NCBI RefSeq assembly: GCF_026571515.1
Contig: NW_026852332.1
Coordinates: 310,001 to 374,000 of the forward strand
Reading direction: 5' to 3'
Source of the DNA: Ruditapes philippinarum
Lineage: Eukaryota
Length of the DNA stretch: 64,000 nt
In this document: positions 18,314-52,073 of the stretch, piece after piece
How positions within the stretch are numbered: the first letter of the stretch is position 1
Layout: every line of letters begins with the position of its first letter
Program-made: the position numbers and the translations under genes
Notes under the pieces: model-generated
Databases searched by the model: none
The model's input: the letters and a program-made list of their open reading frames with translations, nothing else
What the model was told of the DNA's origin: nothing

Positions 18314-18846
18314 GATTACATTAAATTACAGAGTGAATCGGATTTCACAAATTTATTAGAAGAGTCTGAATGATTCTGACCCTATACAAGCTGGGTACAA
18401 GGCATGCATTAAAACTAATGGTTATACTAACTTCTTCATGATTTTCTTCAAGAATCTTTGAAATAATGTTCATTTACAATAAATGTTTTACCAATGCAAA
18501 ATCCTTCCTCTTGGACAGGGGAAACCTGTAGAGTTTAGGGTATGCAACAGCCATTTGTTGCTGCCAATTTCAACTTTACCGCTTATAGCCACAGCAACCT
18601 ATCAATTAATTTTATTGAATTAATTTTTATTATCTGAAAAAAATCACAGCAATTTGCTGCGAAATTGCCTTTTTCTAATAAAGAATGCTCAGTATTTGAA
18701 GTTTTGGCGAGCTAATCAGGGCTGTCATGAATCTTTTGTTTCAAGTTTGGTAAGAAGTTTTTTAAAATAAATTTTTATTTGCTTCTTTCAGATTGACATT
18801 TTATCCACATAACAGTAGTTTAATTGAAACAGAAGCAGCAGCGGAA

Positions 18847-19645
18847 ATGGCAGCAAAACAGAAAGAAGAGGTAGTGGACAGTTCTGAAGATGAGGCTGAT
18901 AGTTTTGATAATTATGGTGTGTTCCAGAGTGACTATGAATTTAAATTTGTACAGGAGGGTAATGATAAGACAACACTTATGTTGCCTCCTGTTACATATG
19001 ACAGTATGGAAGTCAAGTATTTCAATGTTGAAATAGAGGTTGACAGTGAATTGCTTGTTAGTGCACTTGAAAAAGAAAAGACAGTGAATGGCACAACCAG
19101 ATTTTTTTTCCGAATAGCTAAATCTGGTGGGCAACTTGGTCAAGGGGATGATGGTGAGGCATATGAAAAGCTTGGTGAAGATGGTTATGATTATGGGGAA
19201 ATGAAAGACAAAGCTGAAGTACAAGCAAAAAAGCCAAAGGGAAAAAATCCTAAGGCCAGAGCTCCAATGGATGCTCACAACTACAGTAAACAAAAAGTAA
19301 TGGTGAAGTCTGCACCAACTATTAAAGTTGAAAGCGAAGAATTGCCAACAATGAATTTGGATGGTACACAACTTGATGATGAGGAGGAGGAAGAAGAAGA
19401 GGATGAAGGCGAAGATGTGGAAGATGATGGTGATGACGATGATGATATGGATGATCTTGAAGAAATTGAAATGTTAGGAGATGCGTCACTGGCAGAGGAT
19501 GACCAGACTGGTTCACCAAGAACACCAAAAAGGAAGAAACCCAAACAAGAACCAACATCATCTGGCAAGAAGAGACGAAAGTATGACAAGACAAATTATT
19601 ACAGTAAAGAATCTACCAACTTCTCTGTAGAGATGACAGATGAAG
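18847..19645 (+). CDS. Constant (shared) coding exon of a multi-isoform C2H2 zinc-finger gene: N-terminal domain, acidic tract, NLS
   Basis: Acceptor ttctttcag at 18791; first ATG in gaaATGg context at 18847 (frame is open upstream, so an earlier coding exon is possible). 266 codons with a D/E tract and PKRKK/KKRRK. Ends GAA G|GTTAGT, a phase-1 donor. Confidence 0.88.
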
Positions 19646-20385
19646 GTTAGTCAATCTGATTTTCTGTAACTTTTACATGAACATCTCAAGTCATTTCCTT
19701 AACACTTAGCCTGCTGACTCTGGGGAAAATTATGGCTAAAATTGCTAATTTGGGAAGTAAAAAAGCTGGTGTCAACTGTTAAGTTCAGATTTTTTGGAAG
19801 ACAGTTTTTCAGAAAAGATAATTAATACCACTTTCTTCTGCGCAAAGTTGAGGGTCAGTTTATAAAATAGATTTTCATAGACTTAATCTTGATAGTGTTT
19901 AAGGTTTTATAATTTTTATGGAAATGTCTTGGATGTTCTTTTAGTAATAGGTTTTTCCCAAATCCTACATATTGAAATTTTACACATAGCTAAATAATAA
20001 TGAAATAGAAAGTTATTCAAAGTTTAAAAAATGTTAATTTATCATTCTGATGTCATGACACCAGATTTCAAATATTTTGTTTCACCAATATAAATATATA
20101 GACAAGGAATTGGGAAAAAGCCTGTTTTTTACTGTAAAGGGGTAACCCTTGGGTCATTTCACACATGTCTGATGATTTTAGAATAACTCTCCTTGAAACT
20201 TCATTTAAGCCCTGTTTCTATTTATTACAATCATTTTTACATATGTATGCTTAAAAAATAACCGTCTGAATTATAAAAGAAAGCATGAACAGAGTCAAAG
20301 GTAATGAAATGTTAATAACTTAATGTGATTGCAACCAGTCTAAATATCAAACATATGAGGGTTGATTGAAATTCTGACTGGTTTC

Positions 20386-20611
20386 AACCCATAACCTGCT
20401 GATTTTGTGTTATAGATTTGTCCTGCTTAGAATTTGGCAAACTCTTATCAAAGTTTAAAGGACTTCAATATCAAAATTAAAAAAATGAAGCTACTGGCTA
20501 TATATACAGAAAGGCCAGGTCAGACTGTGCATATGTGTAGGCTGGCACTGGCTTAGTTGTATACTAGTGGCAAAGATTTGTTACCTTTAGTTCCAGCAGA
20601 TTATGGGTTAA
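20386..20611. mobile_element. piggyBac-like MITE
   Basis: aaCCCATAACCTGCT … AGCAGATTATGGGttaa inverted ends; a related element lies at ~22285-22490. Confidence 0.6.
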
Positions 20612-21899
20612 TCTTCTGATTTTACATGTACAACCTCAGCATTTCTGACATGTTACCTTTAACATCCTAATGTTCATGAGTCCTAAGTTGCATTTTAAGT
20701 TCCTGTAAACAACTTCTTGAGTCCAGGAAGCCTATGTAAAGAGGTCCTGGAACACACATGTAAATGGAATAAGAATAAATATTTTTGCTCCATTTTATGT
20801 TTGAATAAGAGTTGACATTTAGAAAATTTTCAAAAACAAACTTTTGACAAGAAAAATCTACAAGAATCGTCTTTTTGAAAGAAGAAGATAATGCTTAATA
20901 TATGAGCTTTAAGAGTTAAATCTGAGGATATGCTGGCAGTCTCGGACAGTATTGAAGAGGTAAGTCCTTTTGATTTCTGAACCTTTTTATGTAGGATTCC
21001 TGGATTCTCTTTGTAAATTAATTGGATAAGAAGCATCTATAATGAACCCTAGTGTTATGTATTTAGTGAAATTTTTAGGAAAAATTTTCTAAGCAAAATG
21101 TGTTTGATTTTTGTGACAGTATACTAAGTTTCACATTGTTTCAGTCAAGTAATTCTGAGAAGTCTTGTTTTCAAGTGTTTTTGGATTGACGTACAGTGCT
21201 AGTCTTTTCTTGATGACATGATTAAGTAACTTCTCAAGTAACTGCGAACTTCTCTCAATGAATTACTAAGATAAGTTGATGGATTAATGGTCCTGTACAA
21301 AGTTTCAAGATTGAATGTTTCTTTATATATTATATGGACAGCGAATTTTTTCCTTCTTTGATTGTGTATGGTGAATTTTCCAAATTGAAAATACAGACAT
21401 TTTTTCCCAATTCTAAACAAAAAACACAACAATTATATTGGCATAAGGTATGATATTCGCCGAGAAATCAATCCTTGGAAAAAACTTCATTATTTTACAT
21501 TAGAACGCACCGATGAAACATATTCACATAGAAATGATAAGATAGACAAGGCACAATTGTAAAACAAAAGGCAATTTTCTGAACGCAGCATGTTTTATTG
21601 TACTAATACTTTGTATACCTGCAAATGGGAACTGAAGGCATGTAGGGCAAGGGACATTATTAAGTGATCAGTATTTCTAGAGTTCTGTCCCTTCTTTTAC
21701 ATGGAAAATAAACTTGTATTATTGTAGACAATATCTTTCACATTCATAGATATTCATCTTAAAGTGAAGTGCATATCAGTTATACCATCACAACACTTTT
21801 GAATTTAATTATATCATTGTTGCAATAAAAGGAGCTCTTTTGAGTTAAAAAAATCTAATAACAGAAAATTTGAAATTCTTACATAGATCAAGTGAAGCA

Positions 21900-21936
<37 letters not shown>

Positions 21937-22971
21937 CAAAGGAAAGTAAAAAATGCTCATTAAATTGAAAAATTTTGTGTGCCTAATTTTGTAAGTTACT
22001 AACACTTCATTTTTGGATCATTTTGCGCAATTTACATCATTGAACAGATGAGCCTTGGCACAATATGTGTTGTGCTTGTATTTATTTGTGGGGACATTTC
22101 ATCAAATGCATGTCTTTAATTTATTCCAAGTGGTGGCTTATTTTGTGGATAGGCATGCAGTGTTTTAAATTATTTATTTTGTGAAACTTGTCCAGCTAAT
22201 TGTTCTAGATATGTCTTAAGTTTTACTGTCTTTAAAGCTAGCGATTACTAATTCACTAATTTATGTAATACTAGAATGCCAATGAACCCTTAGCCCGCTG
22301 GTGGCAAAAGATTCTACCCATGCAACTAGTGCAAACCAAGAGGCACATCAATACTTTTGAATTTCATTTGCACTGTAGGCTTTTCAGTCAGTACTTAGTT
22401 CGAAAATTTCCCGTAAAAATGAAAAGTGGTTTTGTCCTGAATGAAAGATTGACAAGTCACTTTTAAGATGTTTAGTGCGGTAGGGGTTAAAGCTGTTTGT
22501 ATTTTAGCTTTTTGAACCTACTGTAGAAGGTGTTTTCCTATATAACTTGTATCATGATAATATTCCTATTTGGAGAGTCAGGTCAACTGGCATAGTACTT
22601 ATTAAACATTAGTCCTGATTCTAAAAACCTGTATAATGACCTTAACTTTCTTGATATTGACAATGGACACTGTGTTGTATTTACTAAGTCATTGATGAAA
22701 GGTTAAAGCTTGTAGTTCTAAACTTGTTTAAATTTGTCATATCTTGAAAAGGAAAGTTATAGAGGTTGAGATTTGGGGTATAAAGTACTAAAAAAAATTT
22801 ATTTAATAAATTTATTTGAAACCTCGGATAAGCTTTATTTTGTCAAAATAAACAAAAATGTTTTATGTTACTTAAATAATGTTTTCAGTGCAGTTTAAAA
22901 AATTTTGTTTGGTCATTTTTTTTTCTACATTTATACATGTTTAAATCTCAACCTCTCAATTTCCTTTACAG

Positions 22972-23630
22972 GAAAGACAAAATTCATCTGTAGGCATTGT
23001 GGGAAGATTTGTAATACAGCCGGAAACATGAGGGATCATTTAGTGATACACATAGACAAAAGAACATTTGCATGCGATGAATGTCCAGCTTGGTTTAAAA
23101 GTATGAAGGCTCTTCAGCGGCATTCTGTGCGTCACACTGTCAAGACTGTCAAGTGCGGTACTTGTAGTGCACTTTTTTACACAACGTCAGAATGTAAGAG
23201 CCATGCAAGTGTTCATATGGACGACAGAAAGTACATTTGTGATATTTGCAATCTAGCGTTCAATCATTCAACGTCTCTATCACGTCATAAAAAAGTTCAC
23301 GCGAGTAGGGGCGACCGGCAGCAGTTTCTATGTCATTTATGTACAGCAGTGTTCTACCGCAAAGACAATATTAGACGTCATTTGAAAAGTATTCATGGAT
23401 CGGATGAAGTACCGGAGCCTCGTAAACAAAACGCAGATAAGTGGATTAGGAACAAACGTATACAGACAAGAGGTAGAACAACTAAATTCTGGTCTGATCC
23501 TCATGATGTTGCACAAAAAGGATTTGATAAACTTGAGGACGATCAAAGTAAAGGGAAATCAAGTGTTTCAAAAGGACGTCGAAGTTTGACTCGGTGCAAA
23601 ATAAACAATACATTAGATTCCACAGAATGA
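22972..23630 (+). CDS. Alternative terminal exon A, 5 C2H2 zinc fingers
   Basis: ttcctttacag|GA AAG ACA AAA TTC ATC TGT; phase 1, in frame with the constant exon. Five CxxC…HxxxH units; ends TGA. Confidence 0.9.
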
Positions 23631-24402: not shown

Positions 24403-24995
24403 TGACATTTTTGCATAAATGTAGAATACTCCGACATTATTTGCATAAATGTAGAACGGGCTGACATTATTTGCATAAATGTAGAACAGTCTGACATTGT
24501 TTGCATAAATGTAGAACAGTCTGACATTATTTGCATAAATGTAGAACAGTCTGACATTATTTGCATAAATGTAGAACAGTCTGACATTATTTGCATAAAT
24601 GTAGAACAGTCTGACATTATTTGCATAAATATAGAACAGTGACATTATTTGCATAAATGTAGAACAGTCTGTCATTATTTGCATAAATTTAGAACAGTCT
24701 GACATTATATGCATAAATTTAGATCAGTCTGACATTATTTGCATAAATGTAGAACAGCCTGACATTATTTGCATAAATGTAGAACAGTCTGACAATATTT
24801 GCATAAATGTAGAAGAGGCTGACATTATTTGCATAAATGTAGAACAGTCTGTCATTATTTGTATAAATGTAGAACAGTCTGACATTATTTACATAAATGT
24901 AGAACAGCCTGCCATTTGCATAAATGTAAAACAGTCTTTCATTATTTGTATAAATATAGAACAGCCTGACATTATTTGTATAAATGAAGAACGGC
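24403..24995. repeat. Minisatellite, 30 bp unit (ctgacattatttgcataaatgtagaacagt), about 20 copies
   Basis: Direct inspection; explains the MQIMSDCSTF ORFs. Confidence 0.95.
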
Positions 24996-26059: not shown

Positions 26060-26817
26060 GTAATAAAGTTTTCAAGTGCAACACTTGTGATTACGTATCG
26101 AAATGGCCAGGCAACATGCGTGACCATGTTCGCGTCCATACTGGCGAAAAACCATTTGGCTGTGACAAATGCAGTAAGAGTTTTGCCAACCAATCTGGCC
26201 TACAGAAGCACAGTGTCATCCACTCCGACGAACGCCCACATATTTGTGACATCTGCGGCTTTGCTTTTAAGCTGAAACGCCAGCTGGTAAAGCACTATAG
26301 GCGTCACCTTACACCAGGGTCCATATTATGCCCGTATTGTGGTAAACGTTATTACTCCCAGTCGGAACTAAGACACCATATGCCAACACACACTGGTGAG
26401 AGGAAGTTTGAGTGCGATGTATGTAATAAGATGTTTGCCTCAGTATCTTCTTTGGGAAGACATAAGGCTCTACATTCAGGGGCGAGGTTTGAATGTCACA
26501 TCTGTGGGAATTTATCAATGCGAAAAGAGTACTGGCGTACTCACATGATCAAGTATCATCATTTTAGTGAGAACGATGAACTGCTGGCAAAGAAGATGCG
26601 ATTCAATCGCTTATATGATCAAACTGAGGAGATGAAAGTACCGAGTGTACATAAAATTAAAGTGGTAAAAGCAGAATCAATGAATGTCGAGGAAGGTGAA
26701 ATTATCGAAGGTGAAATTATTGAAGGCGAGCAAATAGCAGAAGTTCAGGAAATAGTGGCTGGACAGGAGATAAATGATGAAAATGTCCAGTATATAATTA
26801 GCCTGAACTATAATTGA
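26060..26817 (+). CDS. Alternative terminal exon B, 6 C2H2 zinc fingers plus acidic tail
   Basis: aattttcag|GT AAT AAA GTT TTC AAG TGC; phase 1. First finger begins upstream of the ORF-track Met; TGEKP linker; ends TGA. Confidence 0.92.
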
Positions 26818-33471: not shown

Positions 33472-34578
33472 TGTCTTTGTAATGTTTTTAACACAAAGGA
33501 ACATAAATGATTTCAAACAGTCCAATATTTTTAATTGTTGTAAAATTATAGATTAGATAAGTTATTGTAATTTTAAGGGTGGATCTGCATTTTGGTTGCT
33601 GTCAATATTCACATGTAAATTAGAAAATAAACTTCTTCAAAATTGATTTGTATATTGTTCTGCAAATGTAACATCAACCTTGCATACCAAAGTATAAAAA
33701 GTATTTTAATCAGCAAAGATGGTTTACTAGCAGTAAACGTATTGTATATCTCTTTTAATTTAATAATTTCAAATACAGTTCTTGAAAATGTTATAAATAA
33801 GTGCCTTTTTAGCTCCCATCTTATACATGATATTTCACCCAATTGCTTTATTTCAAGACCATTCATCAATTTTATGAAAATTTTTAAAATATGTACCGAC
33901 TGAATAGCAAACAGGGCAGGCCATGGTCAGATGGCATAAATGTGCAAGCTGATCTTGGGTCTGCACTGGATGCTTGGGTAGATTTTGTAGCTGCCAGCAG
34001 GCAAATTACATGAACATCGGTTTATGTTCCTGAAGATAATATTTCAATACTTACAGATAATATATGTGGGTTTTGCAAACCCAGTATAGTTGCATAGGCT
34101 TCAAGATTTTAGAGGAACCCAAGAGTATCTTGAAATTATAGACGAAGCTTTATATAGAAATATTTCATTTCTCAATGGAAAGTTTGCATGTCAGAGGAGC
34201 ATTCTTTATTTGATAACTAATATAAGGGTGCCAGTTTTACTTGAACAGGAATTTGTGACTTACAATTTAGTTCATTTTACATAATATTATCCTTAAGTTT
34301 TTTGAAACTCAATACTGATAGCCATGGGCTTATTTTAGATATTTGGTATGTAGAATTGCCTAGTAGGCGACTATTACAGTTGCATAACTCTTCCCCTTGG
34401 TTTAAAGAATGTCTCAGCCCAAGGTCACTTTTATATTTGACTTGTATTGGAACAGCTTGAGAATTGTCACCAAATGGCTACAACCTGGTATTATTATTGT
34501 AATGTGGACATTCGTAATTTACAAAAGCTCAGAATCCTTATGTTCTGTGTACTTTTGCATTCTCTTTAAATACCGTTT

Positions 34579-34745
34579 CAGTGTCTAGAAATAGGGGGGC
34601 TTTTTATCGAAAAATGAGAATTCTTTACATTTGTTGATATTTTTCCTTCTTTCTGTATGTAAACCCCCCCCCTGCCTCTGAAAAAATAGGGGGTGGGGCT
34701 CTAAAAATGAGTGAATCCCCCATTCCCCTCCTAGAATAAACACTG
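34579..34745. mobile_element. CAGTG-TIR MITE with 6 bp TSD, present in all three triplicated units
   Basis: cagtgtcta…tagaataaacactg; CCATTT flanks (left flank clearer in the copies at 38702 and 42800). Confidence 0.7.
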
Positions 34746-35337
34746 CCATTTACGTCACATATAGTTTTATGTGTTGAAAAATAACCTTTCACATATTATA
34801 ATAAGATAATGTTGAACCTCACTTACTTGAATTATAAACCATCTTCTGGTTGAAGATAAGGTATGGATTCATTGTTTAACTTTGATTTGACTTTAGCCAA
34901 ACTTACAAATAAAGAGAGGAATGGTCCTCTAGAAAGCTTGTTTAAACTATGGGCATTGAGTAGTTGTGTATGCTGGTCCTACTGATTGACTTGATTGAAT
35001 GATATCAACTAATGATCTCCATTATAGAAAATATGACCTTTTTGTAATTGTGCTCAGGTGAACGAAATATATAAGACCGATTATAGTTCTTGTATGACAG
35101 TTATTTAACCCTAAAAAACACACAAAAATTATGTACGATTGAATGAAGTTGTAGTTTCTGCACAAAATCTATGAAAAAAACACAAAAAAACAAAAAAACA
35201 CAAAAAAAAACAACAACAAACAAAACAAACTTTTATTTAAACCAACAAAACAACTGGATTTGAGCGTATGTGTCCATGTTTTATTTTTTTACGCACATCT
35301 TTTATTGAGATCTATCTTAAAATTATTTTCCTTTCAG

Positions 35338-35903
35338 GCAAGAGATTCTTCAAGTGCACACATTGCAAATATAATACACCAATAATCGGAAATATGAAGA
35401 TACATGTACGGAGACACACGGGAGAACGTCCTTTCTCTTGTGACATGTGCATCAAAACGTTCACGTGTGGGGCCACTCTAAAGCTTCATAAGAGAACCAT
35501 TCACTGTGAGGAACGTAGCGAAATCTGTGAATATTGTCACGCCTCTTTCAAAACAAGACAGAATCTCAAGATGCATCAGAAGCGTCATTTTGATATTAAG
35601 AAGCACCTTTGTCCATTTTGTGGCAAAAGAATGGCCAATAAAATGGCTATGGAAGAACATGTGAACACACATACAAAGTCACAGAAGTACATGTGCGGAA
35701 TATGCGACAAAATAGTTTCAAGTGACTCGGCCATGAAGCGGCATATGCTATTACATACCGGTGGAAATGTTAAGTGCCATTTATGTTCGAAAACTTTTGT
35801 TCGGAAAGAAATCTGGAGAAAACATATGATTAATGAACATAAATATAGCGGCAATGAGGACATTTTGGGAAAAAGGCAAAATCAAGTGCAGAAAGTAATA
35901 TAG
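35338..35903 (+). CDS. Alternative terminal exon C, 6 C2H2 zinc fingers
   Basis: ttttcctttcag|GC AAG AGA TTC TTC AAG TGC; phase 1; TGERP linker; ends TAG. Confidence 0.92.
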
Positions 35904-38900
35904 ATGTTTTGAGATTTCTTTGATGAAGCTTTAATCGCATGTGCATTGATGTTGAAATTATTTGAGTATAAGTCTGTACTGTGTTTCGTAATGTGATGGT
36001 AGAAGATAACTAAAGCGGACAGACAATTAGACTTATCGGTTATAATATCAAGAAAAAGCAGTGCTAAACTTAAGGTTCAGACCAGATTTCATCTCCATGG
36101 AAACAGACTTAAGTTCATTCAATTAATTGATGAGATTAATAAATCAATTTAAAAAAAACCTGTTAAACACGTTCATTTGAATGAAAGATTGATCTGTCTT
36201 AGTCATTAAAAAGTGGAAACATTACCATATTAAAGACGTTTACTAAAGTTTTCAAATAAGCAGAACGAAAACTTTGCATGGTCTTTGTAATTGTCTTGGA
36301 TTTTTTTTAGAAATTGTCTTCATTTTTAAGATATCATATTGTAATACAATAAATGGAATATCGTCCAAAATTTAGTTTGATTGGATAGTATTTGTTGTGA
36401 ATGGTGTTGATGAAATACCCTCTTGAAAATATATTGGTAATTTGTAATTGTCTGCTGAAGATAATCCATGAACAATTTTATATATTGTATCTTGTTTACT
36501 TGACATTGTTTAGGTAAATGTGTTTTGTAAAAAGTTCAAATACACAGGAAGCATTCGCTTTGTTGTTTTAATGTAATGATTTTTTTATTTACAGTCAAAT
36601 TTGCTGTGAAAGACCAGTTTTTGAGAAAAATATTTAATGTTGGTGATAGGCCATCTGTGGCCAAATAACCATGTCCTGAAATTGTAACGTGGTCGGCGCT
36701 TCTTTAGAATGTGCTTTGGTGCTCATCTGACTTTGATGTTAACTATTTAAAAAATTTTTTCATAATATCTTTGAAGTATTGAAGATTTTGTGTATTAAAG
36801 AATCAGATTTGGTGTATTTATAGGCATTTCAGTTACACGATGTTGATGTTAATGATTTTCAAAGTTCATTTGGCACAACAGATCTTTTCTTTCCTTCTTC
36901 AGTGGGCGGGTAGTTAATCAAATTTCTCAATATATCGCCTTAACTGGCACAATAATTATTCAACAGTTGATCTGTTTTTTTTCGGCCGTAGGCCGTCTGA
37001 TTTCACATTGACTTCCTCTAAAATTAACAGTAAAGATATGAATATAGGCAGAATTTTCTATAGCCTGACCGTTTGATACTTTAGAAGAGCTTCCGTTATA
37101 GGTAGAGGTATGTTCGATTGCACGATGGCAAGAAGTGTTGGACAGAATAAATATAAAACACAATAATGATATTTTCTAGATGTTTTCTAACAGCTTTTCA
37201 ATAATATATGAAATCGCCTTTTTGATACTTCTGTGTTCGATTGGGTTTCTCATCTGTTCTAGTCATTATATTCTCTTCTCGAACCGGGCATAAGACGATT
37301 GAAACGAACTTTAGACTAATTTACAGTTGCAAAATTCTCCGTGGAAGTAGTGTACAGTATCTACTAAATTTTTGTTTTATTATAAATCCCTAGTCAATTC
37401 AAATTCCATTTTGATTAAAATCAAATAATGTAAGTAATATTGTTTAAATCTAAGATGACAATTAATTGGGAAAAACATTGCAGGTAAAAATGAACTGAAA
37501 TAGAACTATTGAAGACGAATAAAATCTTCTGTTTGCGGTTAGCGTGGTTAGTAGTAGCTTATCCTATGCAAGTTAACAAGTTTGACTTCGGCCGAGTATC
37601 TTTTTAAAGATACTTCTTGTTAAAACATTGTTTTAAAATCTGTACAATATTTTGTAGGCACAGGCTGCCTCTTCTTCTTACACAATAACATCCTCAAGAA
37701 AAGGGTAATACATTTAAAAGAATCGCTTTCTGATATTTAAGTGTAAGAGGCATCCGACCTTATTCTTAGTCATACCGAATGTCTATGCAATATGCTAAGC
37801 GAATTTGTACTAGCCTCTTAATATATGGGAGCAGTGGCAAATAAAATGAAACATTCGAAAAGCTTGATTTTACGTAATTATAGATCTTTCATTTTGTAAC
37901 TTGTATAATTTATAGGACAATATTATCCTATTAAGCGCCAGAGCAAGAAAAGAGGGAAACAACATCGCGGAACAATGTCAACATTTTTTTTGTGGTAAGT
38001 CGTCAATATTTAAGGTCATTATGGTCATTTGTATATGTTGTAAAAGTTTATTTTAATAGCAGATCTTGGGTCTGCACAGGATGAATGGGTAGATTCTGTA
38101 GCTGCCAGCAGGCAAATAACATGAACATCGGTTTATGTTCCTGAAGATAATATTTCAATACTTACAGATAATATATGTGGGTTTTGCAAACCCAGTATAG
38201 CTCTATAGCCTTCAAGATTTTAAGAGGAGACCAAGAGTATCTTGAAATTATAGATAAAGCTTCATATAGAAATATTTCAATTCTCAATGGAAAATTTGCA
38301 TGTCAGAAGATCATCCAGTCAGATGACATTTTTATTTGATAACTAATATAAGGGTGCCAGTTTTACTTGAACAGGAATATGTGACTTACAATTGAGTTCA
38401 TTTACATAATATTATCCTTATTTAAAACTCAATACTGATAGCCATGGGCTTATGTTTTAGATATTTGGTATGTAGAATTGCCTAGTAGACCACTATTACA
38501 GTTACATAACTCTTCCCCTTGGTTTAAAGAATATCTCAGCCCCCAGGTCACTTCTTTTATTGACTTGTATTGGAATATCACCTTTAGAATTGTCACCACT
38601 GGTATTATTATTGTAATGTGGACCTTTGTAATTTACAAAAGCTCAGAATCCTTGTCTGTGTACTTTTGCATTCTCCAAGATAAGGCCTTTAAATACCATT
38701 TCAGTGTCTATTCTAGGATTTGAGAAATAGAGGGGCTTTTTATCGAGAAATGAGAATGTTTTACATTTGTTGATATTTTTACTTCTTTCTCTATGTAAAA
38801 TTTCCCCCCTGCCTCTGAAAAAATAGGGGGGGGATTCTAAAAAAAATGAGTGAATCCCCCATCTCTCCTAGAATAGACACCAGTGACATTTACGTCACAT

Positions 38901-39455
38901 AGTTTTATGTGTGGAAAAATAACCTTTTACATAAGACAATGTTGAACCTCACTCACTTGAATTATTAGCCATCTTCTGATTATAGATAAGGTATGGACTA
39001 ACGGCTTAACTTTAATTTGACTTTAGCCAAACTTACAAATAAAGAGAGGAATGGTCCTCTAGAAGGCTTGTTGAAACTATGGGCAGTCAGTAATTTTGTA
39101 TGCTGGTCCTACTGTTTGACTTGATTGAATAATATCAACTAATGATCTTCATCATAGAAAGATCATAGAAAATATGACCTTTTTGTAATTGTGCTCAGGT
39201 GAGTGAAATATATAAGACCGATTATAGTTCTTGTATGACAGTTATTTAACCCTAAAAATCCAAAGAAAATTATGTACGATTGAATGAAGTTGAAGTTTCT
39301 GCATAATATCTATGAAAAAAAAAACACACAAAAAAACTTATTTAAAACAACTAGACAACTGAATTTGAGCAAATATTTCCCTGTTTTAACGGAAGTCCGT
39401 AAATCTTTACGCACATCTTTTATTCAGATCTATCTTAAAATTATTTTCCTTTCAG

Positions 39456-40021
39456 GCGACAGATTCTTCAAGTGCACACATTGCAAATATAATTCACCAA
39501 AAATCGGAAATATGAAGATGCATGTACGGAGACACACGGGAGAACGTCCTTTCTCGTGTGACATGTGCATCAAAACGTTCACGTGTGGGGCTACTCTCAA
39601 GCTTCATAAGAGAAGCATCCACTGTGAGGAACGTAGCGAAATCTGTGAATATTGTCACGCCTCTTTCAAAACAAGACAGAATCTCAAGACGCATCAGAAG
39701 CGTCATTTTGATATTAAGAAGCACCTTTGTCCATTTTGTGGCAAGAGAATGGCCAATAAAATGGCTATGGAAGCGCATGTGAACACGCATACAAAGTCAC
39801 AGAAGTACATGTGCGGAATATGCGACAAAATGGTTTCAAGTGACTCGGCCATGAAGCGACATATGCTATTACATACCGGTGGAAATGTTAAGTGCCATTT
39901 ATGTTCGAAAACTTTTGTTCGGAAAGAAATCTGGAGAAAACATATGATTAATGAGCATAAATATAGCGGCAATGAGGACATTTTGGGTAAAAGGCAAAAT
40001 CAAGTGCAGAAAGTAATATAG
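39456..40021 (+). CDS. Alternative terminal exon D, 6 C2H2 zinc fingers (paralogue of C)
   Basis: ttttcctttcag|GC GAC AGA TTC TTC AAG TGC; phase 1; 8 amino-acid differences from C; intact ORF. Confidence 0.92.
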
Positions 40022-43000
40022 ATGTTTGAGATTTCTTTGATGAAGCTTAAATCGCATGTGAATTGATGTTGAAATTAATTTGAGTATAAGTCTGTACTGT
40101 GTTTCATTATGTGATGGTAGAAGATAACTAATGATGCGGACAGACAATTAGACTTATCGGTTATAATATCAAAAAAAGCAGTGCTACACTTAAGGTTCAG
40201 ACTAGATTACATTTCCATGGAAACAGACTTAAGTTCATTCAATTAAGTGATGGGATTAATGAATCAATTAAAAATAAACTGTTAAACACGCTCATTTGAA
40301 TCAAAGATTCATTAAAAAAGTGGATACATTACCATATTAAAGACGTTTACTAAAGTTTTCAAATAAACAGAACTTAAACTTTGCATGGTCTTTGTAATTG
40401 TCTTGGATTTTTTTAGAATTTGTCTTCATTTTTAAGAGTTCATATTGTAATACAATAAATGGAATGTCGTCCAAAATTTAGTTTGATTGGATGGTATTTG
40501 TTGTGAATGGTGTTGATGAAATACCCTCTTAAAAATATATTGGTAATTTGTAATTGTCTGCTGAAGATAATCCATGAACAATTTTATATATTGTATCTTG
40601 TTTACTTGATATTGTTTAGGTAAATGTGTTTTGTAAAAAGTTCAAATACACAGGAAGAATTCGCTTTGTCATTTTAATGTATTGATTTTTTATTTACAGT
40701 CAAATTTGCTGTGAAAGACCAGTTTTTGAGAAAAATATTTAATGTTGGTGATAGGCCATCTGTGGCCAAATAACCATGTCCTGAAATTGTAACGTGGTCG
40801 GCGCTTCTTTAGAATGTGCTTTGGTGCTCATCTGACTTTGATGTTAACTATTGAAATTTTTTTTTGTAATATCTTTGAAGTATTGAAGATTTTGTGTATT
40901 AAAGAATCAGATTTGGTGTATTTATAGGCATTTCAGTTACACGATGTTGATGTTAATGATTTTCAAAGCTCATTTGGCACAACATATCTTTTCTTTCCTT
41001 CTTAAGTGGGCGGGTAGTTAATCAAATTTCTCAATATATCGCCCCAACTGGCACAGTAATTATTCAACAGTTGATCTGGTTGTTTTTCGGCCGTTGGCCG
41101 TCTGATTTCACCTTGACTTCCTCTAAAATTAACAGTAAAGATATGAATATAGGCAGAATTTTCTATAGCCTGACCGTTTGATACTTTAGAAGAGCTTCCG
41201 TTATAGGTAGGGGTATGTTCGATTGCACGATGGCAAGAAGTGTTGGACAGAATAAATATAAAAACACAATAATGATATTTTCTAGATGTTTTCTAACAGC
41301 TTTTCAATAAATATATGAAATCGCCTTTTTGATACTTCTGTGTTCGATTGGGTTTCTCATCTGTTCTAGTCATTATATTCTCTTCTCGAACCGGGCATAA
41401 GACGATTGAAACGAACTTTAGACTAATTTACAGTTGCAAAATTCTCCCTGGAAGTAGTGTACAGTATCTACTAAATCTTTGTTTTATTATAAATCCCTAG
41501 TCAATTCAAATTCCATTTTGATTAAAATCAAATAATGTAAGTAATATTGTTTAAATCTAAGATGACAATTAATTGGGACAAACATTGCAGGTAAAAATGA
41601 ACTGAAATAGAACTATTGAAGACGAATAAAATCTTCTGTTTGCGGTTAGCATGGTTAGTAGTAGCTTATCCTATGCAAGTTAACAAGTTTGACTTCGGCC
41701 GAGTATCTTTTTAAAGATACTTCTTGTTAAAACATTGTTTTAAAATATGTACAATATTTTGTAGGCACAGGCTGCCTCTTCTTCTTACACAATAACATCC
41801 TCAAGAAAAGGGGTAATACAGAATCGCTTTCTGATATTTAAGTGTAAGAGGCATCCGACCTTATTCTTAGTCATACCGAATGTCTATGCAATATGCTAAG
41901 CGAATTTGTACTAGCCTCTTAATATATGGGAGCAGTGGCAAATAAAATGAAACATTCGAAAAGCTTGATTTTACGTAATTATAGATCTTTCATTTTGTAA
42001 CTGGTATAATTTATAGGACAATATTATCCTATTAAGCGCCAGAGCAAGAAAAGAGGGAAACAATATCGCGGAACAATGTCAACATTTTTTTTTGTAGTAA
42101 GTCGTCAATATTTAAGGTCATTATGGTCATTTGTATATGTTGTAAAAGTTTATTTCAATAGCAGATCTTGGGTCTGTACTGGATGAATGGGTAGATTCTG
42201 TAGCTGCCAGCAGGCAAATAACATGAACATCGGTTTATGTTCCTGAAGATAATATTTCAATACTTAAGATAATATATGTGGGTTTAGCTAACCCAGTATA
42301 GGTGCAAAGCCTTCAAGATTTTAGAGGAAACCAAGAGTATCTTGAAATTATAGACGAAGCTTTATATAGAAATATTTCATTTCTCAATGGAAAGTTTGCA
42401 TGTCAAAAGAGCGTCCAGTCAGATGACATTTTCATTTAATAACTAATATAAGGGTGCCAGTTTTACTTGAACAGGAATTTGTCACTTACAATTTAGTTCA
42501 TTTACATAATATTATCCTTATTTGAAACTCAATACTGATAGCCATGGGATTATATTTTAGATATATGGTATGTAGATTTGCTTAATAGTCGACTATTAAA
42601 ATTGCATAACTTCCCCTTGGTTTAAAGAATGTCTCAGCCTTCAGGTCACTTCTTTTATTGACTTGTATTGGAATATCACCTTAAGAATTGTCACCACTGG
42701 TATTATTATTGTAATGTGGACCTTTGTAATTTACAAAAGCTCAGAATCCTTGTCTGTGTACTTTTGCATTCTCGAAGATAAGGCCTTTAAATACCATTTC
42801 AGTGTCTATTCTAGGATTTGATAAATAGGGGGGCTTTTTATCGAGAAATGAGAATGTTTTACATTTGTTGATATTTTTACTTCTTTCTCTATGTAAAATT
42901 TCCCCCCTGCCTCTGAAAAAATAGGGGGGGGGGGGGATTCTAAAAAAAATGAGTGAATCCCCCATCCCTCCTAGAATAGACACCAGTGACATTTATGTCA

Positions 43001-43548
43001 CATAGTTTTATGTGTGGAAAAATAACCTTTTACATAAGATAATGTTGAACCTCACTCACTTCAATTATTAACAATCTTCTGATTATAGATAAGGTATGGA
43101 CTAACGGTTTAACTTTAATTTGACTAGAAGTGAGGAATGGTCCTCTAGAAGGCTTGTTGAAACTATGGGCAGTCAGTAATTTTGTATGCTGGTCCTACTG
43201 ATTGACGTGATTGAATAATATCAACTAAATTATAAATGATCTTCATCATAGAAAGATCATAGAAAATATGACCTTTTTGTAATTGTGCTCAGGTGAGAAA
43301 TATATAAGACTGATTATAGTTCTTGTATGACAGTTATTTAACCCTAAAAATCCAAAGAAAATTATGTACGATTGAATGAAGTTGAAGTTTCTGCATAATA
43401 TCTATGGAAAAAAAACACACACACAAAAACTTATTAAAATGAACTAGACAACTGAATTTGAGCAAATATTTCCCTGTTTTAACGGATGTCCTTGATTTTT
43501 TACGCACATCTTTTATTCAGGTCCATCTTAAAATTATTTTCCTTTCAG

Positions 43549-44114
43549 GCGACAGATTCTTCAAGTGCACACATTGCAAATATAATTCACCAAAAATCGG
43601 AAATATGAAGATGCATGTACGGAGACACACGGGAGAACGTCCTTTCTCGTGTGACATGTGCATCAAAGCGTTCACGTGTCGGGCCACTCTAAAGCTTCAT
43701 AAGAGAAGCATCCACTGTGAGGCACGTAGCGAAATCTGTGAATATTGTCACGCCTCTTTCAAAACAAGACAGAATCTCAAGACGCATCAGAAGCGTCATT
43801 TTGATATTAAGAAGCACCTTTGTCCATTTTGTGGCAAGAGAATGGCCAATAAAATGGCTATGAAAGCGCATGTGAACACACATACAAAGTCACAAAAGTA
43901 CATGTGCGGAATATGCGACAAAATGGTTTCAAGTGACTCGGCCATGAAGCGACATATGCTATTACATACCGGTGGAAATGTTAAGTGCCATTTATGTTCG
44001 AAAACTTTTGTTCGGAAAGAAATCTGGAGAAAACATATGATTAATGAGCATAAATATAGCGGCAATGAGGACATTTTGGGAAAAAGGCAAAATCAAGTGC
44101 AGAAAGTAATATAG
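43549..44114 (+). CDS. Alternative terminal exon E, 6 C2H2 zinc fingers (paralogue of C/D)
   Basis: ttttcctttcag|GC GAC AGA TTC; phase 1; 4 amino-acid differences from D; intact ORF. Confidence 0.92.
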
Positions 44115-44767
44115 ATGTTTGAGATTTCTTTGATGAATCTTAAATCGCATGTGAATTGATGTTGAAATTAATTTGAGTATAAGTCTGTACTGTGTTTCAT
44201 AATGTGATGGTAGAAGATAACTAATGATGCGGAAAGACAATTAGACTTATCGGTTATAATATCAAAAAAAAAAAAGTGCTACACTTAAGGTTCAGAAGAC
44301 TAGATTACATTTCCATGGAAAAAGACTTAAGTTCATTCAATTAAGTGATGGGATTAATAAATCAATTAAAAAATAAACTGTTAAACACGCTCATTTTAAT
44401 CAAAGATTCATTAAAAAGTGGATACATTACCATATTAAAGACGTTTACTAAAGTTTTCAAATAAGCAGAACGAAAACTTTGCATGGTCTTTGTAATTGTC
44501 TTGGATTTTTTTAGAATTTGTCTTCATTTTTAAGATTTCATATTGTAAAACAATAAATGGAATGTCGTCCAAGATTTAGTTTGATTGGATAGTATTTGTT
44601 GTGAATGGTGTTGATGAAATACCCTCTTGAAAATATATTGGTAATTTGTAATTGTCTGCTGAAGATATTCCATGAACAATTTTATATATTCTATTTTGTT
44701 TACTTGATATTGTTTAGGTAAATGTGTTTTGTAAAAAGTTCAAATACACAGGAAGCATTCGCTTTGT

Positions 44768-46045
44768 TATGCCCCCGCCATGTAATGGCCGGGGCATATA
44801 GTGTTACCCTGTTCCGTCCTTCCGTCATTCCGTCCTTCCGTCATTCCGTCATTCTGTCATTCCGTCATCATCAGTTTCCGTTCATTATCTTAGTAACGGT
44901 TGCATATATTCAACTCAAACTTGACATATGGATATGTCATTAGAAAATACAGGTCAAGTTCGAATTTGGTCATGTTTCGATGATTTTTTGGCAGAGTTAT
45001 GCCCCTTTTACTTTGAAAATAATATGAAATTTTCAGTTTCCGTTCATTATCTCCCCAACGGTACAACACATTCAACTCAAATTTGACATATGGATATGTC
45101 ATGAGAAAATACAGGTCAAGTTCGAATTTGGTCATGGTTCGATGATTTTTGGCAGAGTTATGCCCCTTTTACTTTGAAAATAATATGAAATTTTCAGTTT
45201 CCGTTCATTATCACCCCAACGGTATAACACATTCAACTCAAATTTGACATTAAATATGTCTTGAGAAAATACAGGTCAAATTTGAATTTGGTCATGGTTC
45301 GATGATTTTTGGCAGAGTTATGCCCCTTTTACTTTGAAAATAATATGAAATTTTCAGTTTCCGTTCATTATCTCCCCAACGGTACAACACATTCAACTCA
45401 AATTTGACATATGGATATGTCATGAGAAAATACAGGTCATGTTTGAATTTGGTCATGGTTCGATGATTTTTTGGCAGAGAAATGCCCTTTTCGCTTTGAA
45501 AATGATATGAAATTTACAGTTTCTGTTCATTGTCTACCCAACAGTGTTACATATTCAACTCAAATTTGACATATGGATATGTCAAAGGAATGGGCAGGTC
45601 AAGTTGGAATTTGGTCATGGTTCGATGATTTTTTGGCAGAGTTATGTCCCTTTCACTTTGAAAATAATATAGATACATCTTCGGAATAAGCAGTTTAAGT
45701 TTGAATTTGGTCGTGGTTCAATGATTTTGGACAAACTTATCTTTCTTGAATATTGGAAAAATTTTGAACTTTCAGTTTCAGCACTCATACTTTTGTTGAA
45801 ATGTATGTAGCCATTATTTTGGCTACAAATATGAAATATGCTATTTTCAAAAGGTTAAGACTGAATAATTTCAGTGCCTTGAACATTGTATGAAAATGGT
45901 TTGTGTTAACATTGAAAAGTTTTAAGGGCTTTGAACTTAAAATGAAAACAATAATTTGTGCAAACAAATTTGGAACTAAATATTATAACATCTGAAATTT
46001 TGGCTGCATGTGGGGGCATCCGTGGCATGATGACACATTTCTAGT
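44768..46045 (+). mobile_element. HINE-like element inserted at TT downstream of exon E
   Basis: Absent from the paralogous sites in units 1 and 2 (gctttgttgtttt). tatgcccc…ggggcat subTIRs, ccgt microsatellite, ~155-160 bp array, ctagt end. Confidence 0.92.
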
Positions 46046-47521
46046 TGTTTTAATGTATTGATTTTTTATTTACAGTCAAATTTGCTGTGAAAGACCAGTT
46101 TTTGAGAAAAATATTAAATGTTGGTGATAGGCCATCTGTGGCCAAATAACCATGTCCTGAAATTGTAACGTGGTCGGTGCTTCTTTAGAATGTGCTTTGG
46201 TGCTCATCTGACTTTGATGTTAACTATTGAAAAAACTTTTTTGTAATATCTTTGAAGTATTGAAGATTTTGTGTATTAAAGAATCAGATTTGGTGTATTT
46301 ATAGGCATTTCAGTTACACGATGTTGATGTTAATTATTTTCAAAGCTCATTTGGCACAACATATCTTTTCTTTCCTTCTTAAGTGGGCGGGTAGTTAATC
46401 AAATTTCTCAATATATCGCCTTAACTGGCACAGTAATTATTCAACAGTTGATCTGGTTGTTTTTCGGCCGTAGGCCGTCTGATTTCACTTTGACTTCCTC
46501 TAAAATTAACAGTAAAGATATGAATATAGGCAGAATTTTCTATAGCCTGACCGATTGATACTTTAGAAGAGCTTCCGTTAAAGGTAGAGGTATGTTCAAT
46601 TGCGCGATGGCAAGAAGTGTTGGACAGAATAAATATGAAAACACAATAATGATATTTTCTAGATGTTTTCTAACAGCTTTTCAATAAATATATGAAATCG
46701 CCTTTTGATACTTCTGTGTTCGATTGGGTTTCCCATCTAAGCTGTTCTAGTCCTTATATTCTCTTCTCGAACCGGGCATAAGACTTTAGACTAATTTACA
46801 GTTGCAAATTCTCCGTGGAAGTAGTGTACAGTATCTACTAAATCTTTGTTTTATTATAAATTCCTAGTCAATTCAAATTCCATTTTGATTAAAATCAAAT
46901 AATGTAAGTAATATTGTTTACATCTAAGATGACAATTAATTGGTAAAAACATTGCAAGTAAAAATGAACTGAAATAAAACTATTGAGGACGAATAAAATC
47001 TTCTGTTTGCGGTTAGCATGGTTAGTAGTAGCTTATCCTATGCAAGTTAACAAGCTTGACCTCGGCCGAGTATCTTTTTAAAGATACTTCTTGTTAAAAC
47101 ATTGTTTTAAAATATGTACAATATTTTGTAGGCACAGGCTGCCTCTTCTTCTCACACAATAACATCCTCAAGAAAAGGGGTAATACATTTTAAAAAGATT
47201 GCTTTCTGATAATTAAGTGTAAGAAGCATCCGAGCTTATTCTTAGTCATACCGAATGTCTATGCAATACGCTAAGCGAATTTGTACTAGCCTCTTAATAT
47301 AAGGGAGCAGTGGCAAATAAAATGAAATTTTCGAAAATCTTGATTTTGCGTAATTATAGATCTTTAAGTTTGTAACAAGTATAATTTATTAAACAATTTT
47401 GTCCTATTAAGTGTCAGAGAAAGAAAAGAGGGAAACAATATTGCGGACCAAGTAAACATTTTTTGTGGTAAGTCGTCAATGTTTAAGGTCATTATGGTCA
47501 TTTGTATATGTTGTAAAAGTT

Positions 47522-47834: not shown

Positions 47835-47979
47835 TTTTAATAGCAGAAGATAAGAAAAGTTTATTTGGCCGCAGTCTTTATTTTGGTTTGTAAATATATC
47901 TTTGATGATCTTTGATATTCACCTTTGTCGTTATAAACCAAGCACCTGGTTGATCTAGTTGTTGTTTATTTCACTGCAG

Positions 47980-48533
47980 GAGAGAGAATTTTCAAATGCA
48001 GATTTTGTGCAAGAGTGACGAAACGTGCCAGCGATATCAAACGCCATATAAGAACGCACACAGGCGAACGACCTTATGCGTGTGAAAAGTGCAATAACCA
48101 GTTTGCTAGTCTTTCTAACCTTATTGCCCATAAGGAAACTCATTCCAAGGAACGTTTATACATATGCGATATTTGCGGACTCAGTTTCCGGACAAAGAAG
48201 ACTATGAAATCCCACTATAGGCGTCATGTGCAACCTAGGAAATTTCCGTGCATGCATTGCAGTTTTTGTGCCACTTCAAACAGCGCTCTCACGAACCATA
48301 TGAATTTTCATACTGACAGAAAAAGTCAAACTTATGTCATCTGTCATCCCAAATTCCACTGTAAATTATGCTCTTATTCACATATGCAGGAGGAATACTT
48401 GAGGCATCATCAGATACAATGTCATGGTTTTACTGGAAATGAACAAATAATTGCAAAGAAGAATATCAAGGTGCAAATTCGTTACAAAGTTAACAATTCT
48501 TCGTCTGTCTCGGATAATTTCGGCCAGCAGTAG
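47980..48533 (+). CDS. Alternative terminal exon F, 5 C2H2 zinc fingers (fifth-position finger collapsed)
   Basis: tttatttcactgcag|GA GAG AGA ATT TTC AAA TGC; phase 1; TGERP linker; ends TAG. Confidence 0.9.
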
Positions 48534-50004
48534 TTGAATTCATTTGCGAGTGACTGGTTAATGCGGGCTTTTCGAGTTCACTAATTGTTTTGAAACTTTT
48601 GAAACAAACTTGAGTTGGATGAGTAAGAAACCACAACTCAAATTGTTCTGTTGTTGATCATCCGTAGACTCCTCTTTTTTAACATTTGTATAGAAATGTG
48701 AACTACTTGGACCTTTTCTTTGCATAATTCCATAGTTGTTACAAATTAAATTTCAGTGTGAAAAAATATTTTACGGACATTTGTTTTTGCCTTGTGAGAC
48801 TATAACTGTCGTGGTCTTTTTCTGTCCTCTTTTGTAAGCATGTTGCCTTTACATTTTTTTCATTATTTGCAGATACTTAATAATATAACACTTATTAACT
48901 ATGTGTTGTTTTTTTTCAAGCTCTTGTCACTTGCTACGAAGGACCGAGTTTTAGGCATAAATACCAAAATACAAAGATTGAACTTTACACAGTGCGTAGG
49001 CTGGTCTGAGTTAACAATGGAATTTTTCTTGGGTATACGCTATACCTCGTGCAAAGTAGTTTAAAGCTCACTTTAAGCACGCTTTGTGACGTTCTACTTG
49101 ATAATTATAAGTTAATATGCAATTATAACTACTTGTAAAATATCGTGTATAACACTCTTATACATGTATTAAAACGGGATAATGTTGCTTCACATCCCAT
49201 GATGTGTTAATTTTTTTTTTACAGTTTGGTTTAAGTCTGTTGTCATTTGTTTCAATTTAAACATGATTAAATTTACTATGTGCATGACGTTTTACTTTCT
49301 TTTATAGAACACATTCACCTTGTATGTTTATAATAAATGAAAAATACGATGACTTTTTGTTAACTTGTCAGGAAAATCAACACGATCAGTTCAAAATGTT
49401 GTATTTGGAAGTGTTTCGAATAAATTTATGTAATAAAGGCATGAGCAAGTAAGTTATGTATACCTAGTGTTTTTATTTAGCCTTTAAAAAGTATTACATG
49501 TATAAGTGAAAATGTCATCCCTAAAAAGTCATAATAGTCGGTAATGACCAAAATACATCCATTCGGGTATCATTTTCCAAGTTTCCTAGAAAGAAATCCT
49601 GTTATTCGATGCAACCTCTGCAAAGATGCCCTGTGTAGAACAATTACCTTTTTTATTCCTCCTGAAGTTAAGACTGCATGAAATTTAACCTGTCCAGACA
49701 AAACCTCTTAGCAGTGTTTTTTCTCTCTCTTAATGAAGATGCCTAAGCACCTTGATTTTGGGAAGAATAACTGCTCAGTTAGGAAGCTTAAAGCAGGTGT
49801 CCAGATTTTTGGAAACATGATTTTAAAGAAAATTTCAAATGGAAAGACGCCTTTTAAAGGCATCTGGTGAATCAGGTAAAAAAAAATCGCTACCTAGCCA
49901 AAACAAAAATCCTTAGTCTCCCAGGTGTTCTGCAACGGTTGAATTTTTTGTATGTTCAAATGTACAGTGAAATTTCAGTCATCTTATTTTTCAAGGTAGT
50001 CATT

Positions 50005-50230
50005 GGGCGTCCGTGCCCGAGACAGAGTGGATAAGGTGTTTGACTTTAAAACCATTTGTCCCTCGCTAAGGGTTCGAATCCCGACATGAACTTTTGATTC
50101 TTGTATCGCGTGTCGGTTCGTGCCCGAAATATTGCACGGAATGGCATCTGAGGTCTTTCTCCACCAGTAAAACTGGAACGTCGTCATTTGACCTATACTG
50201 TGTTGGTGTGAGGTTAAACCCAATCAGTCA
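50005..50230 (+). mobile_element. tRNA-derived SINE
   Basis: GGGCGTCCGTG…AGTGGATAAGG, GGTTCGAATCCC B-box, ctccaccagtaaaactgg body. Confidence 0.8.
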
Positions 50231-51498
50231 ATCATATTAAGGCGAACATCTATACGATATATGCATGCTTAATTCCTATCCAAATCTGGTGGATCAGATC
50301 AAAAAGAAGTATAATTATTCGTTGTGTCGCCAAATTTTAATTTTTCAAAACTGATCATCATAAAAGACCTCATGTGCGTCATATTACAAAACGTACCTTA
50401 AAGAATAATTTTCATAGAAAATAGGAGCTTGTTAGATTTAAGCTTGTATGATCAAAGCATAATACTGACTGAGTCTTCTAGATTATAGTTGGTGGTGATT
50501 GTCATAACTCTAGCATTGATTTCCACTATTATTTTGTGAATTTATAAATTTTCCAGTAAGACCTTTTCTTGCAAGGTCAATATCCACATCTATGGCAGAA
50601 ATTTAAATGTAACGCGTCTTTTGGATTATAATTGAGGGTAAATGTCCAAGACTCGGAACTTTGGGTAGAATTAAACTATTATCTGAGTCTTTATAGTGAT
50701 TGAGAATTAAGTTTTAAGTGACTGGTTGTGCTACGTAACGCTAGGCAAATCATTGTTCGGACCTCTTTCTTTAAAATAATTTCAACATTGACATGATTCT
50801 CTGCAGAAACCATGACATTCTTGTTTACAAATAGAATGAAGTTTACTATATACATGTATATTAGTTTGATATGTAATAAAGCGATACTTATTTTGTCACC
50901 CCAGATGTTTTGAAAATGTTTTTGCAAACTTCTGATAGCCACACTAGCTTTTTGAATTGTCAAGCATGAAGGAGATAGAATGTTAATATGACTGACTTCT
51001 TATCTAAAATGAAGACAAATCCCCCCTTAACCATCTAGTCATTGACGTCCTGTAAAATTTTCTTAGTTGAAATATTGTTTATTGCATTAAATACATGTAC
51101 ATGTTTACAAACATATACAAATGATGAGTATATATCAAAAGGCAACAAGTTCTTACAACATGAGATTAAGATAAAATTTTCTTGAGAGTACACCTTACAA
51201 AAGCAGATCAAAGCATACACAGAGAAGATCCTAAATACTAGGACCAACACAATGATAATTAAGAAGCTGTATATGATATTTTTATGTAACACAAAAAAGT
51301 GACATGACATATTTCATAAAATTTCAGTTGTAGAAACTTTTTTGAACTATTCCTGAACCATCTAAATACTATGAAGTTATAAAAGTCTACATGAAATGTT
51401 TTGTTGGGACTGCATACACATTTGCTTTCCAGTTAATTTGCTTGTCAATTAAATGGACAATGCCAAATTCCTACCAATCTTTTTCTCTCCATTTACAG

Positions 51499-52073
51499 GT
51501 AAAAGAATGTACAAATGCGACTTTTGTGAATACTCGTCGAATCAGACAACAAACATTGTAAACCACGTTCGGAGACATACCGGAGAAAGACCGTATGGAT
51601 GTAAGCTCTGTAGCGTACGATGCTATACGTCCGTTGAATACAAGAAACATCTCGAGACTCATAATACGAAGAATTTGAAAGAATGCCATCTCTGCGGCCG
51701 CTCTTTTAAAACGGCCCATACGTTAAGATACCACATACAAAAACATATTAAACGTGGGGCGCATATTTGTGATGTGTGTGGAAAAGATTTTGAATACCCT
51801 TCTGCATTGCAGACCCATTATGTAACTCACACAGGTGAGAAAAGATATGAATGTGGCGAATGCTTTGAAAAGTTTAGCCACAGGAATTCGCTGATGCGAC
51901 ATTTAAGAATCCATGACGGTGACGGATTTAAGTGTCACATATGCGATAAAACGTTCACAAGAAAGGACTACTGGCGTAAGCATTTCATTAAAGACCATGA
52001 CTTTACTGGCAATGAAGATTTCCTTGCAAAGAATTGGTATGGAAAGGTTGATCGTCTTTACAAAACTGAGTGA
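51499..52073 (+). CDS. Alternative terminal exon G, 6 C2H2 zinc fingers
   Basis: tctctccatttacag|GT AAA AGA ATG TAC AAA TGC; phase 1; TGERP and TGEKR linkers; ends TGA. Confidence 0.92.

Follow-up and report, generated by a model that had tools for sequence, protein, structure and literature searches.

One constant coding exon and seven candidate alternative terminal zinc-finger exons at a single locus of the clam Ruditapes philippinarum

Can complete DNA-binding arrays be exchanged on one protein by the choice of the last exon alone? This question is raised by a locus of the clam Ruditapes philippinarum, which lies in a stretch of 64,000 nucleotides (assembly GCF_026571515.1, contig NW_026852332.1, positions 310,001 to 374,000), hereafter called the window, to whose first letter all coordinates refer. 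At this locus, one coding exon, the constant exon, is followed by seven exons encoding C2H2 zinc fingers, named A, B, C1, C2, C3, D, and E. The original prediction, made from the letters of the window, was that these exons belong to one gene producing at least seven proteins. In the present analysis, the gene was read as encoding a clam-restricted C2H2 transcription factor, with a single splice donor that is joined in cis to any one of the seven terminal finger exons, and a probability of about 85% was assigned to this reading.

The arrangement of the exons was determined from the list of open reading frames (ORFs) and from a reading of the junctions, and every predicted coordinate was confirmed, including the constant exon, its phase-1 donor, and the seven acceptors (Table 1). 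The constant ORF extended from 18793 to 19650 and ended with GATGAAG/GTTAGT, which placed the donor at 19645/19646. From the ATG at 18847, the constant exon encoded 266 amino acids (aa) and the first base of the junction Gly codon. No second copy of it was found in the window or in the whole 1.4 Gb assembly, and its predicted absence between the finger exons therefore held. All seven finger exons began at an acceptor of the form cag/G preceded by a pyrimidine tract (68–82%), supplied the last two bases of the Gly codon, placed the first finger Cys six codons further on, and ended with a private stop, exactly as had been proposed. Thus, one upstream donor faced several downstream acceptors of the same phase on one strand, which is the layout of alternative last exons. 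Because the finger exons are paralogues, the shared acceptor position was inherited and does not amount to seven independent coincidences. Its retention despite amino acid identities of 29–43% between exon types argues that the acceptor is in use.

C2H2 zinc-finger proteins are marked by tandem C-x2-4-C-x12-H-x3-5-H units with significant Pfam zf-C2H2 matches. C2H2 Pfam models matched all seven finger exons, each of which carried five or six fingers. Matches to PF00096, PF13894, and PF13465 passed the curated threshold in A, B, C1, D, and E, except that PF13465 fell just short in A, and C2 and C3 were 94–98% identical to C1. The residues at the DNA-contact positions (−1, +2, +3, and +6) differed among the exon types.

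Table 1. Coordinates of the features of the cassette in the window, with the basis of each assignment.
Feature	Position	Strand	Basis
Constant coding exon	18792–19645	+	exact N-terminus of RefSeq isoforms X2–X6
Sole 5' splice site of the cassette, GTTAGT, phase 1	19646–19651	+	read from sequence
Exon A, five C2H2 fingers and distinct basic tail, most divergent type	22972–23630	+	tail of RefSeq X2 (constant + A, P0004)
Exon B, six fingers and long acidic tail ending VQYIISLNYN, most conserved type	26060–26817	+	ORF, Pfam
Exon C1, six fingers	35338–35903	+	tail of RefSeq X4 (constant + C1, P0019)
Exon C2, six fingers	39456–40021	+	tail of RefSeq X5 (constant + C2, P0003)
Exon C3, six fingers, intact	43549–44114	+	ORF; no isoform found
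Exon D, five recognisable fingers (fifth degenerate), fast-evolving	47980–48533	+	tail of RefSeq X6 (constant + D, P0002)
Exon E, six fingers	51499–52073	+	tail of RefSeq X3 (constant + E, P0023)
Three tandem 4.1 kb units, each with one C exon and no constant exon	33947–46300	+	self-BLAST

The joins between the constant exon and the finger exons were sought in database proteins. The isoforms were assigned by comparing these proteins with the per-exon translations. In Ruditapes, the RefSeq proteins XP_060604114, -122, -133, -140, and -147 (isoforms X2–X6) consisted of the exact constant region and one finger exon each; they agreed residue for residue, with the junction at the predicted Gly. Moreover, every database protein of the set began in the constant exon. 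In Mercenaria mercenaria, isoforms X1–X7 shared one common N-terminus and carried seven different finger tails, and in Mactra antiquata (Mactridae, P0014) the constant region was joined to a B-type array. In addition, a 529-aa ORF on a Logan contig of 1915 bases (P0018) contained the constant region and a B-type array, uninterrupted and with no intron between them, and a spliced mRNA from one more species is the simplest explanation for this contig. Automated annotation calls these proteins "ZBTB17-like", "SCAN domain-containing 31-like", and "KRAB domain-containing"; these names are misleading and reflect finger similarity only. Membership in the KRAB-, SCAN-, or BTB-zinc-finger families was considered and rejected, as the constant exon had no such Pfam match and the precomputed Pfam lists of the isoforms contained finger families only.

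The history of the cassette was examined with a maximum-likelihood tree of 16 finger tails. In this tree, exons of Ruditapes paired with isoforms of Mercenaria (Mm) as follows: A with Mm-X6 (100/100), B with X2 (91/93), the C1–C3 clade with X5 (100/99), D with X3 (92/93), and E with X7 (87/84). Mercenaria X1 and X4 paired together (97/97), without a Ruditapes partner. The five orthologous pairs imply that at least five exon types predate the split of the two venerids. Both species belong to the Veneridae, and Mactra belongs to another superfamily of the same order. The amino acid identity between orthologues was 70% for A, 76% for B, 53% for C, 44% for D, and 48% for E, and the N-terminal domain of the constant region (aa 19–93) was 93% identical between Ruditapes and Mercenaria. 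The contact residues were nearly unchanged in the pairs A/X6 and B/X2. The branch of exon D was the longest in the tree (1.51).

The three C exons lie in tandem units starting at 33947, 38058, and 42160, which were 88–93% identical; the predicted 4.1 kb duplication of the finger exon alone was thereby borne out. The triplication is recent and occurred on the Ruditapes side; in the tree, C1–C3 together form the sister group of Mercenaria X5 alone. The C1–C3 exons diverged by 1.6–3.5% without indels, and their upstream introns diverged by 3.6–9.8% with many indels. The ratio of nonsynonymous to synonymous differences per site (pN/pS) among C1–C3 was 0.18–0.53, and C3 differed from C2 by four amino acids with a pN/pS of 0.18. 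Given the low pN/pS and the less divergent, indel-free exons, all three C copies look constrained. As a separate observation, C1–C3 showed 12 amino acid differences, two of which were at contact positions (approximately 1.5 expected), and no clear enrichment was seen; the two changes were Gly/Arg at +2 of finger 2 and Glu/Lys at +6 of finger 4.

Several observations weigh against the reading of one gene with seven terminal exons. The joins in Ruditapes are known from automated Gnomon models, and exact look-ups of the stand-alone finger ORFs returned neither an isoform X1 nor a C3 isoform from the protein collection. Furthermore, AATAAA/ATTAAA hexamers occurred after every exon, but they occurred at approximately 3 per kb throughout the AT-rich window and are therefore uninformative on poly(A) sites. 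The NCBI pipeline normally derives alternative Gnomon isoforms from transcript evidence. In total, joins to the donor were found for five of the seven exons as RefSeq model proteins, for the B type in other species only, and for C3 in no protein. Judged from its rank, Ruditapes X1 should be the longest product, with the constant region and exon B in 518 aa. Accordingly, the predicted set of at least seven proteins was matched by exact RefSeq isoforms for A, E, C1, C2, and D, and the Ruditapes isoforms of B and C3 were not found.

The same isoforms could also arise by trans-splicing; each variable exon would then have a promoter of its own, and its transcript would be linked to a separately made transcript of the constant exon. 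The layout is one in which trans-splicing is known (PMC4387717, PMC11426971), and the introns are long, with distances of 3.3 to 32 kb from the donor. However, all the exons lie on one strand and in one order, and alternative last exons spliced in cis are what is commonly seen in animals. In lola and mod(mdg4), trans-splicing is promoted by a U1-binding intronic pseudo-5' splice site (PMC4387717), but the clam locus showed no strong site of this kind that resembled the U1-binding TSA core. A scan for the U1-complementary consensus gave no site of at least 9/11 in intron 1 (19646–22971), and in the whole locus two such sites were found versus 4.6 expected from shuffles. Trans-splicing was considered unlikely, and the choice of an alternative last exon in cis is the most likely mechanism. 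It is quite unlikely that only some of the exons, such as A and B, are used while the others are silent or decaying duplicates attached by the annotation pipeline. This explanation would agree with the lack of one finger and the long branch of exon D, with the missing C3 isoform, and with the identities of only 44–53% between C, D, and E and their Mercenaria partners. On the other hand, the seven frames are intact and the acceptors are preserved, and the young copies show pN/pS < 1 and no indels. Moreover, in Mercenaria the counterparts of exons C, D, and E are likewise intact and appear as annotated isoforms; exons without a use would not be expected to persist in this way across that divergence.

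The cassette could also be only apparent, with the finger ORFs being separate genes that have private small 5' exons and promoters. In-frame ATGs are present upstream of the C1, C2, and E acceptors, and exon E carries a Met before its first Cys (G-KRMYKC), by which the earlier statement that no Met lies between acceptor and first finger was found to be wrong for this exon. However, no usable ATG precedes finger 1 in A, B, C3, or D, and the frame of exon B is closed three codons upstream of its acceptor. The open stretches upstream of the acceptors are not conserved even among C1, C2, and C3, and the database proteins all start in the constant exon. Separate genes were therefore rated highly improbable, and the locus was treated as one gene with one donor and seven terminal exons.

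In the proposed mechanism, a single promoter-proximal coding exon would provide the orphan N-terminal domain together with the acidic tract and the basic clusters that resemble nuclear-localisation signals. From the one phase-1 donor of this exon, splicing in cis would reach one of the seven downstream acceptors, and the selected exon would become the terminal exon, with five or six fingers, its own stop, and presumably its own poly(A) site. The choice of exon would thus be an alternative-last-exon selection coupled to polyadenylation, in which seven acceptors compete for one donor. The predicted products of 450–518 aa would share the effector and localisation parts and differ in the residues that contact DNA. 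Different target sites would be expected from the different contact residues; nuclear location, DNA binding, and differential regulation of the products are likewise predictions. As docking/selector RNA pairing is known from comparable loci (PMC6191721), intron 1 was compared for such pairing with the sequences that precede exons B–E, and 736 short matches on the complementary strand were obtained versus 807 same-strand controls. The complementary-strand matches were thus not in excess of the controls, nor were they stronger, and none of them shared one docking site.

The donor of the constant exon has unusual features. The GTTAGT sequence carries a non-consensus T at +3, and reading through into the intron gives Gly followed by TAG (intron +3 to +5). 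The constant-only ORFs of three other species (P0005, P0010, and P0011) likewise ended directly after the junction Gly, from which we infer that a stop lies at intron +3 to +5 in those species as well. Hence, the feature of the donor, with T at +3 and the TAG, seems to be conserved. The donor may be a deliberately weak, regulated splice site, or it may provide a route to a finger-less product, and an isoform without fingers may end at this TAG. At its other end, the constant exon is preceded by a pyrimidine tract and CAG (ttcag) ending at 18791, upstream of the ATG at 18847. As this sequence resembles an acceptor, the constant exon is probably exon 2 and would follow a non-coding first exon.

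The constant region consists of a beta-rich N-terminal domain (aa 19–93), an acidic tract (aa 171–215, 62% Asp/Glu), and the basic clusters KRKKPK and KKRRK. A Pfam scan of the constant exon gave no family at E ≤ 0.1, and BTB, KRAB, and SCAN were absent, in agreement with the earlier claim that no BTB domain is present. A profile search of the PDB with the constant region gave a chance-level match only (E 0.066), which fell in the low-complexity stretch, and no usable match came from the ESM Atlas. Among 1.84 billion proteins, six representatives of the constant region were found; a profile search with this region added no proteins beyond the first search, and a scan of metagenome contigs revealed no relatives. 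The named relatives were all Venerida clams, and the remaining ones were Logan, ENA, and JGI contigs. The AlphaFold2 (AF2) model of the whole constant region was poor, with a predicted local distance difference test score (pLDDT) of 49.6. When the region was cropped to aa 15–100, a small all-beta domain was obtained with moderate confidence (pLDDT 75.8), and the cropped model had no fold match in the PDB (Foldseek E > 1; best VIA Z 3.0). Short invariant motifs were also observed in the constant region, namely MDAHNYSK (aa 139–150, window ~19261–19296), LDGT(Q/E), and RKY...YS. The strict HCF-1-binding pattern is [DE]-H-x-Y, and MDAHNYSK was rejected as a strict HCF-1-binding motif owing to the Ala before His.

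Some features of the finger exons were recorded apart from the splicing question. Exon D has five recognisable fingers, the fifth of which is degenerate (...FHTDRKSQTYVICHPKFHC...), versus six in the Mercenaria orthologue; together with the long branch, this suggests relaxed constraint or altered function of this exon. Directly after the last finger, the motif H-x-[FY]-[ST]-x-N-[ED]-[ED]-x-L-[AG]-K was observed in the exon types B–E and in their Mercenaria orthologues (examples at window 26530–26580 and 51990–52040), and it was not present in A/X6. The VQYIISL motif was conserved at the end of the B-type tails of Ruditapes, Mercenaria, and Mactra.

The completeness of the cassette was assessed by searching the eight exon translations against the window with tblastn, and only these eight features were found, all on the forward strand. 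The Mercenaria tails detected no additional finger remnants in the window, and no further finger exon or remnant was present in the window or elsewhere on its contig. As all matches on this contig fall inside the window, the cassette is complete here. Within the genome, the closest kin of each finger exon were the other exons of the locus (E ~1e-44 to 1e-38), compared with 1e-29 or weaker elsewhere, and the other zinc-finger loci sampled carried arrays of 11–22 fingers with a different build. Upstream of the zinc-finger gene, an exon with a Clat_adaptor_s match (PF01217, E 3.5e-4) was located on the reverse strand at 8098–8247. It suggests a neighbouring COPZ/AP-sigma-like gene on that opposite strand, consistent with the earlier remark that the locus is COPZ1-adjacent. 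Pfam searches with ten larger flanking ORFs gave no match. Repeats were also seen within the introns: a 30-bp minisatellite of approximately 20 copies between exons A and B (24403–24992), and satellite-like arrays of 162–169 bp between B and C1 (29783–31261 and 32710–33360) and between C3 and D (44871–45670).

The locus was classed as a convergent alternative-last-exon transcription-factor cassette built on an orphan domain. Its independent evolution, which had been proposed from the missing BTB domain and the swapping of whole arrays, is well supported, as the orphan domain is confined to Venerida and the TTK-type BTB domain is reported to be arthropod-specific and absent from Mollusca (PMC11426971). 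We consider it reasonably probable that Venerida independently invented a lola-type locus and kept at least five orthologous arrays from a time before Ruditapes and Mercenaria diverged, with the B type already present in Mactridae, and that the cassette continues to expand through tandem duplication of the finger exon only. In that case, protostomes would have arrived twice at this way of diversifying a regulator, and the clam locus would be a natural system for studying the birth and recruitment of new DNA-binding isoforms. The insect loci that swap domains are textbook cases tied to an arthropod-specific BTB subtype, and the clam locus would represent a second, unrelated origin; with orthology at the level of single exons across a family-level divergence and with a fresh triplication, it would indicate that evolution has come to the swappable DNA-binding design repeatedly and that the design is no peculiarity of BTB genes. 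The locus would also offer a tractable case for the control of alternative-last-exon choice and for the gain of targets by new isoforms. The literature searched, which left most subscription journals outside, contained no description of the locus or of a lola-like design in molluscs. The expectation that none had been described was upheld to this extent, but for two species the isoforms are already present in RefSeq through automated annotation. With most of the isoforms modelled there, the practical novelty is limited.

Among known systems, lola resembles the clam locus in that its common 5' exons are combined with a single 3' exon out of many, and the majority of these 3' exons code for distinct C2H2 fingers and end in a stop of their own. 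A set of factors that have the N-terminus in common and differ in the DNA-binding end is thereby obtained from one locus; in lola, 17 of 20 isoforms carry fingers (PMC11426971). However, the constant part of lola is a TTK-type BTB domain, whereas that of the clam gene is an orphan beta-rich domain without BTB. The variable exons of lola encode one or two fingers, and each clam exon encodes a whole array of five or six. In addition, lola has 20 isoforms compared with seven at the clam locus, and no motif like the U1-binding intronic one that lola uses for trans-splicing was found there.

The genes mod(mdg4), broad, fruitless, and tramtrack likewise combine a shared N-terminal module with alternative C-terminal exons for DNA binding or interaction. 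The variable exons of mod(mdg4) lie on both strands, and broad, fruitless, and tramtrack have two to four variants with a pair of fingers each. In mod(mdg4), FLYWCH domains are swapped, and trans-splicing of transcripts from independent promoters is the only route to its isoforms (PMC13490949, PMC12692577). Unlike the clam locus, all four are TTK-type BTB genes.

Generic alternative-last-exon genes share the principle of one donor and competing terminal exons, each comprising a 3' splice site and a poly(A) site. They usually have two or three unrelated terminal exons, whereas the clam locus has seven paralogous exons that swap a complete DNA-binding domain and are still duplicating in tandem. 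Human PEG3/ZIM2 produces two zinc-finger products from common 5' exons and different 3' finger exons; unlike the clam locus, it has two products only, is KRAB/SCAN-related and imprinted, and has no tandem paralogous cassette. The clustered protocadherins and UGT1A resemble the clam locus in their tandemly duplicating, paralogous variable exons, which are used one at a time with constant exons. They are nevertheless its mirror image, with variable 5' exons that have their own promoters and a constant 3' part, and they do not encode transcription factors. Therefore, the clam locus works like the loci of the lola group but is not a member of that family, because the TTK-type BTB domain is absent.

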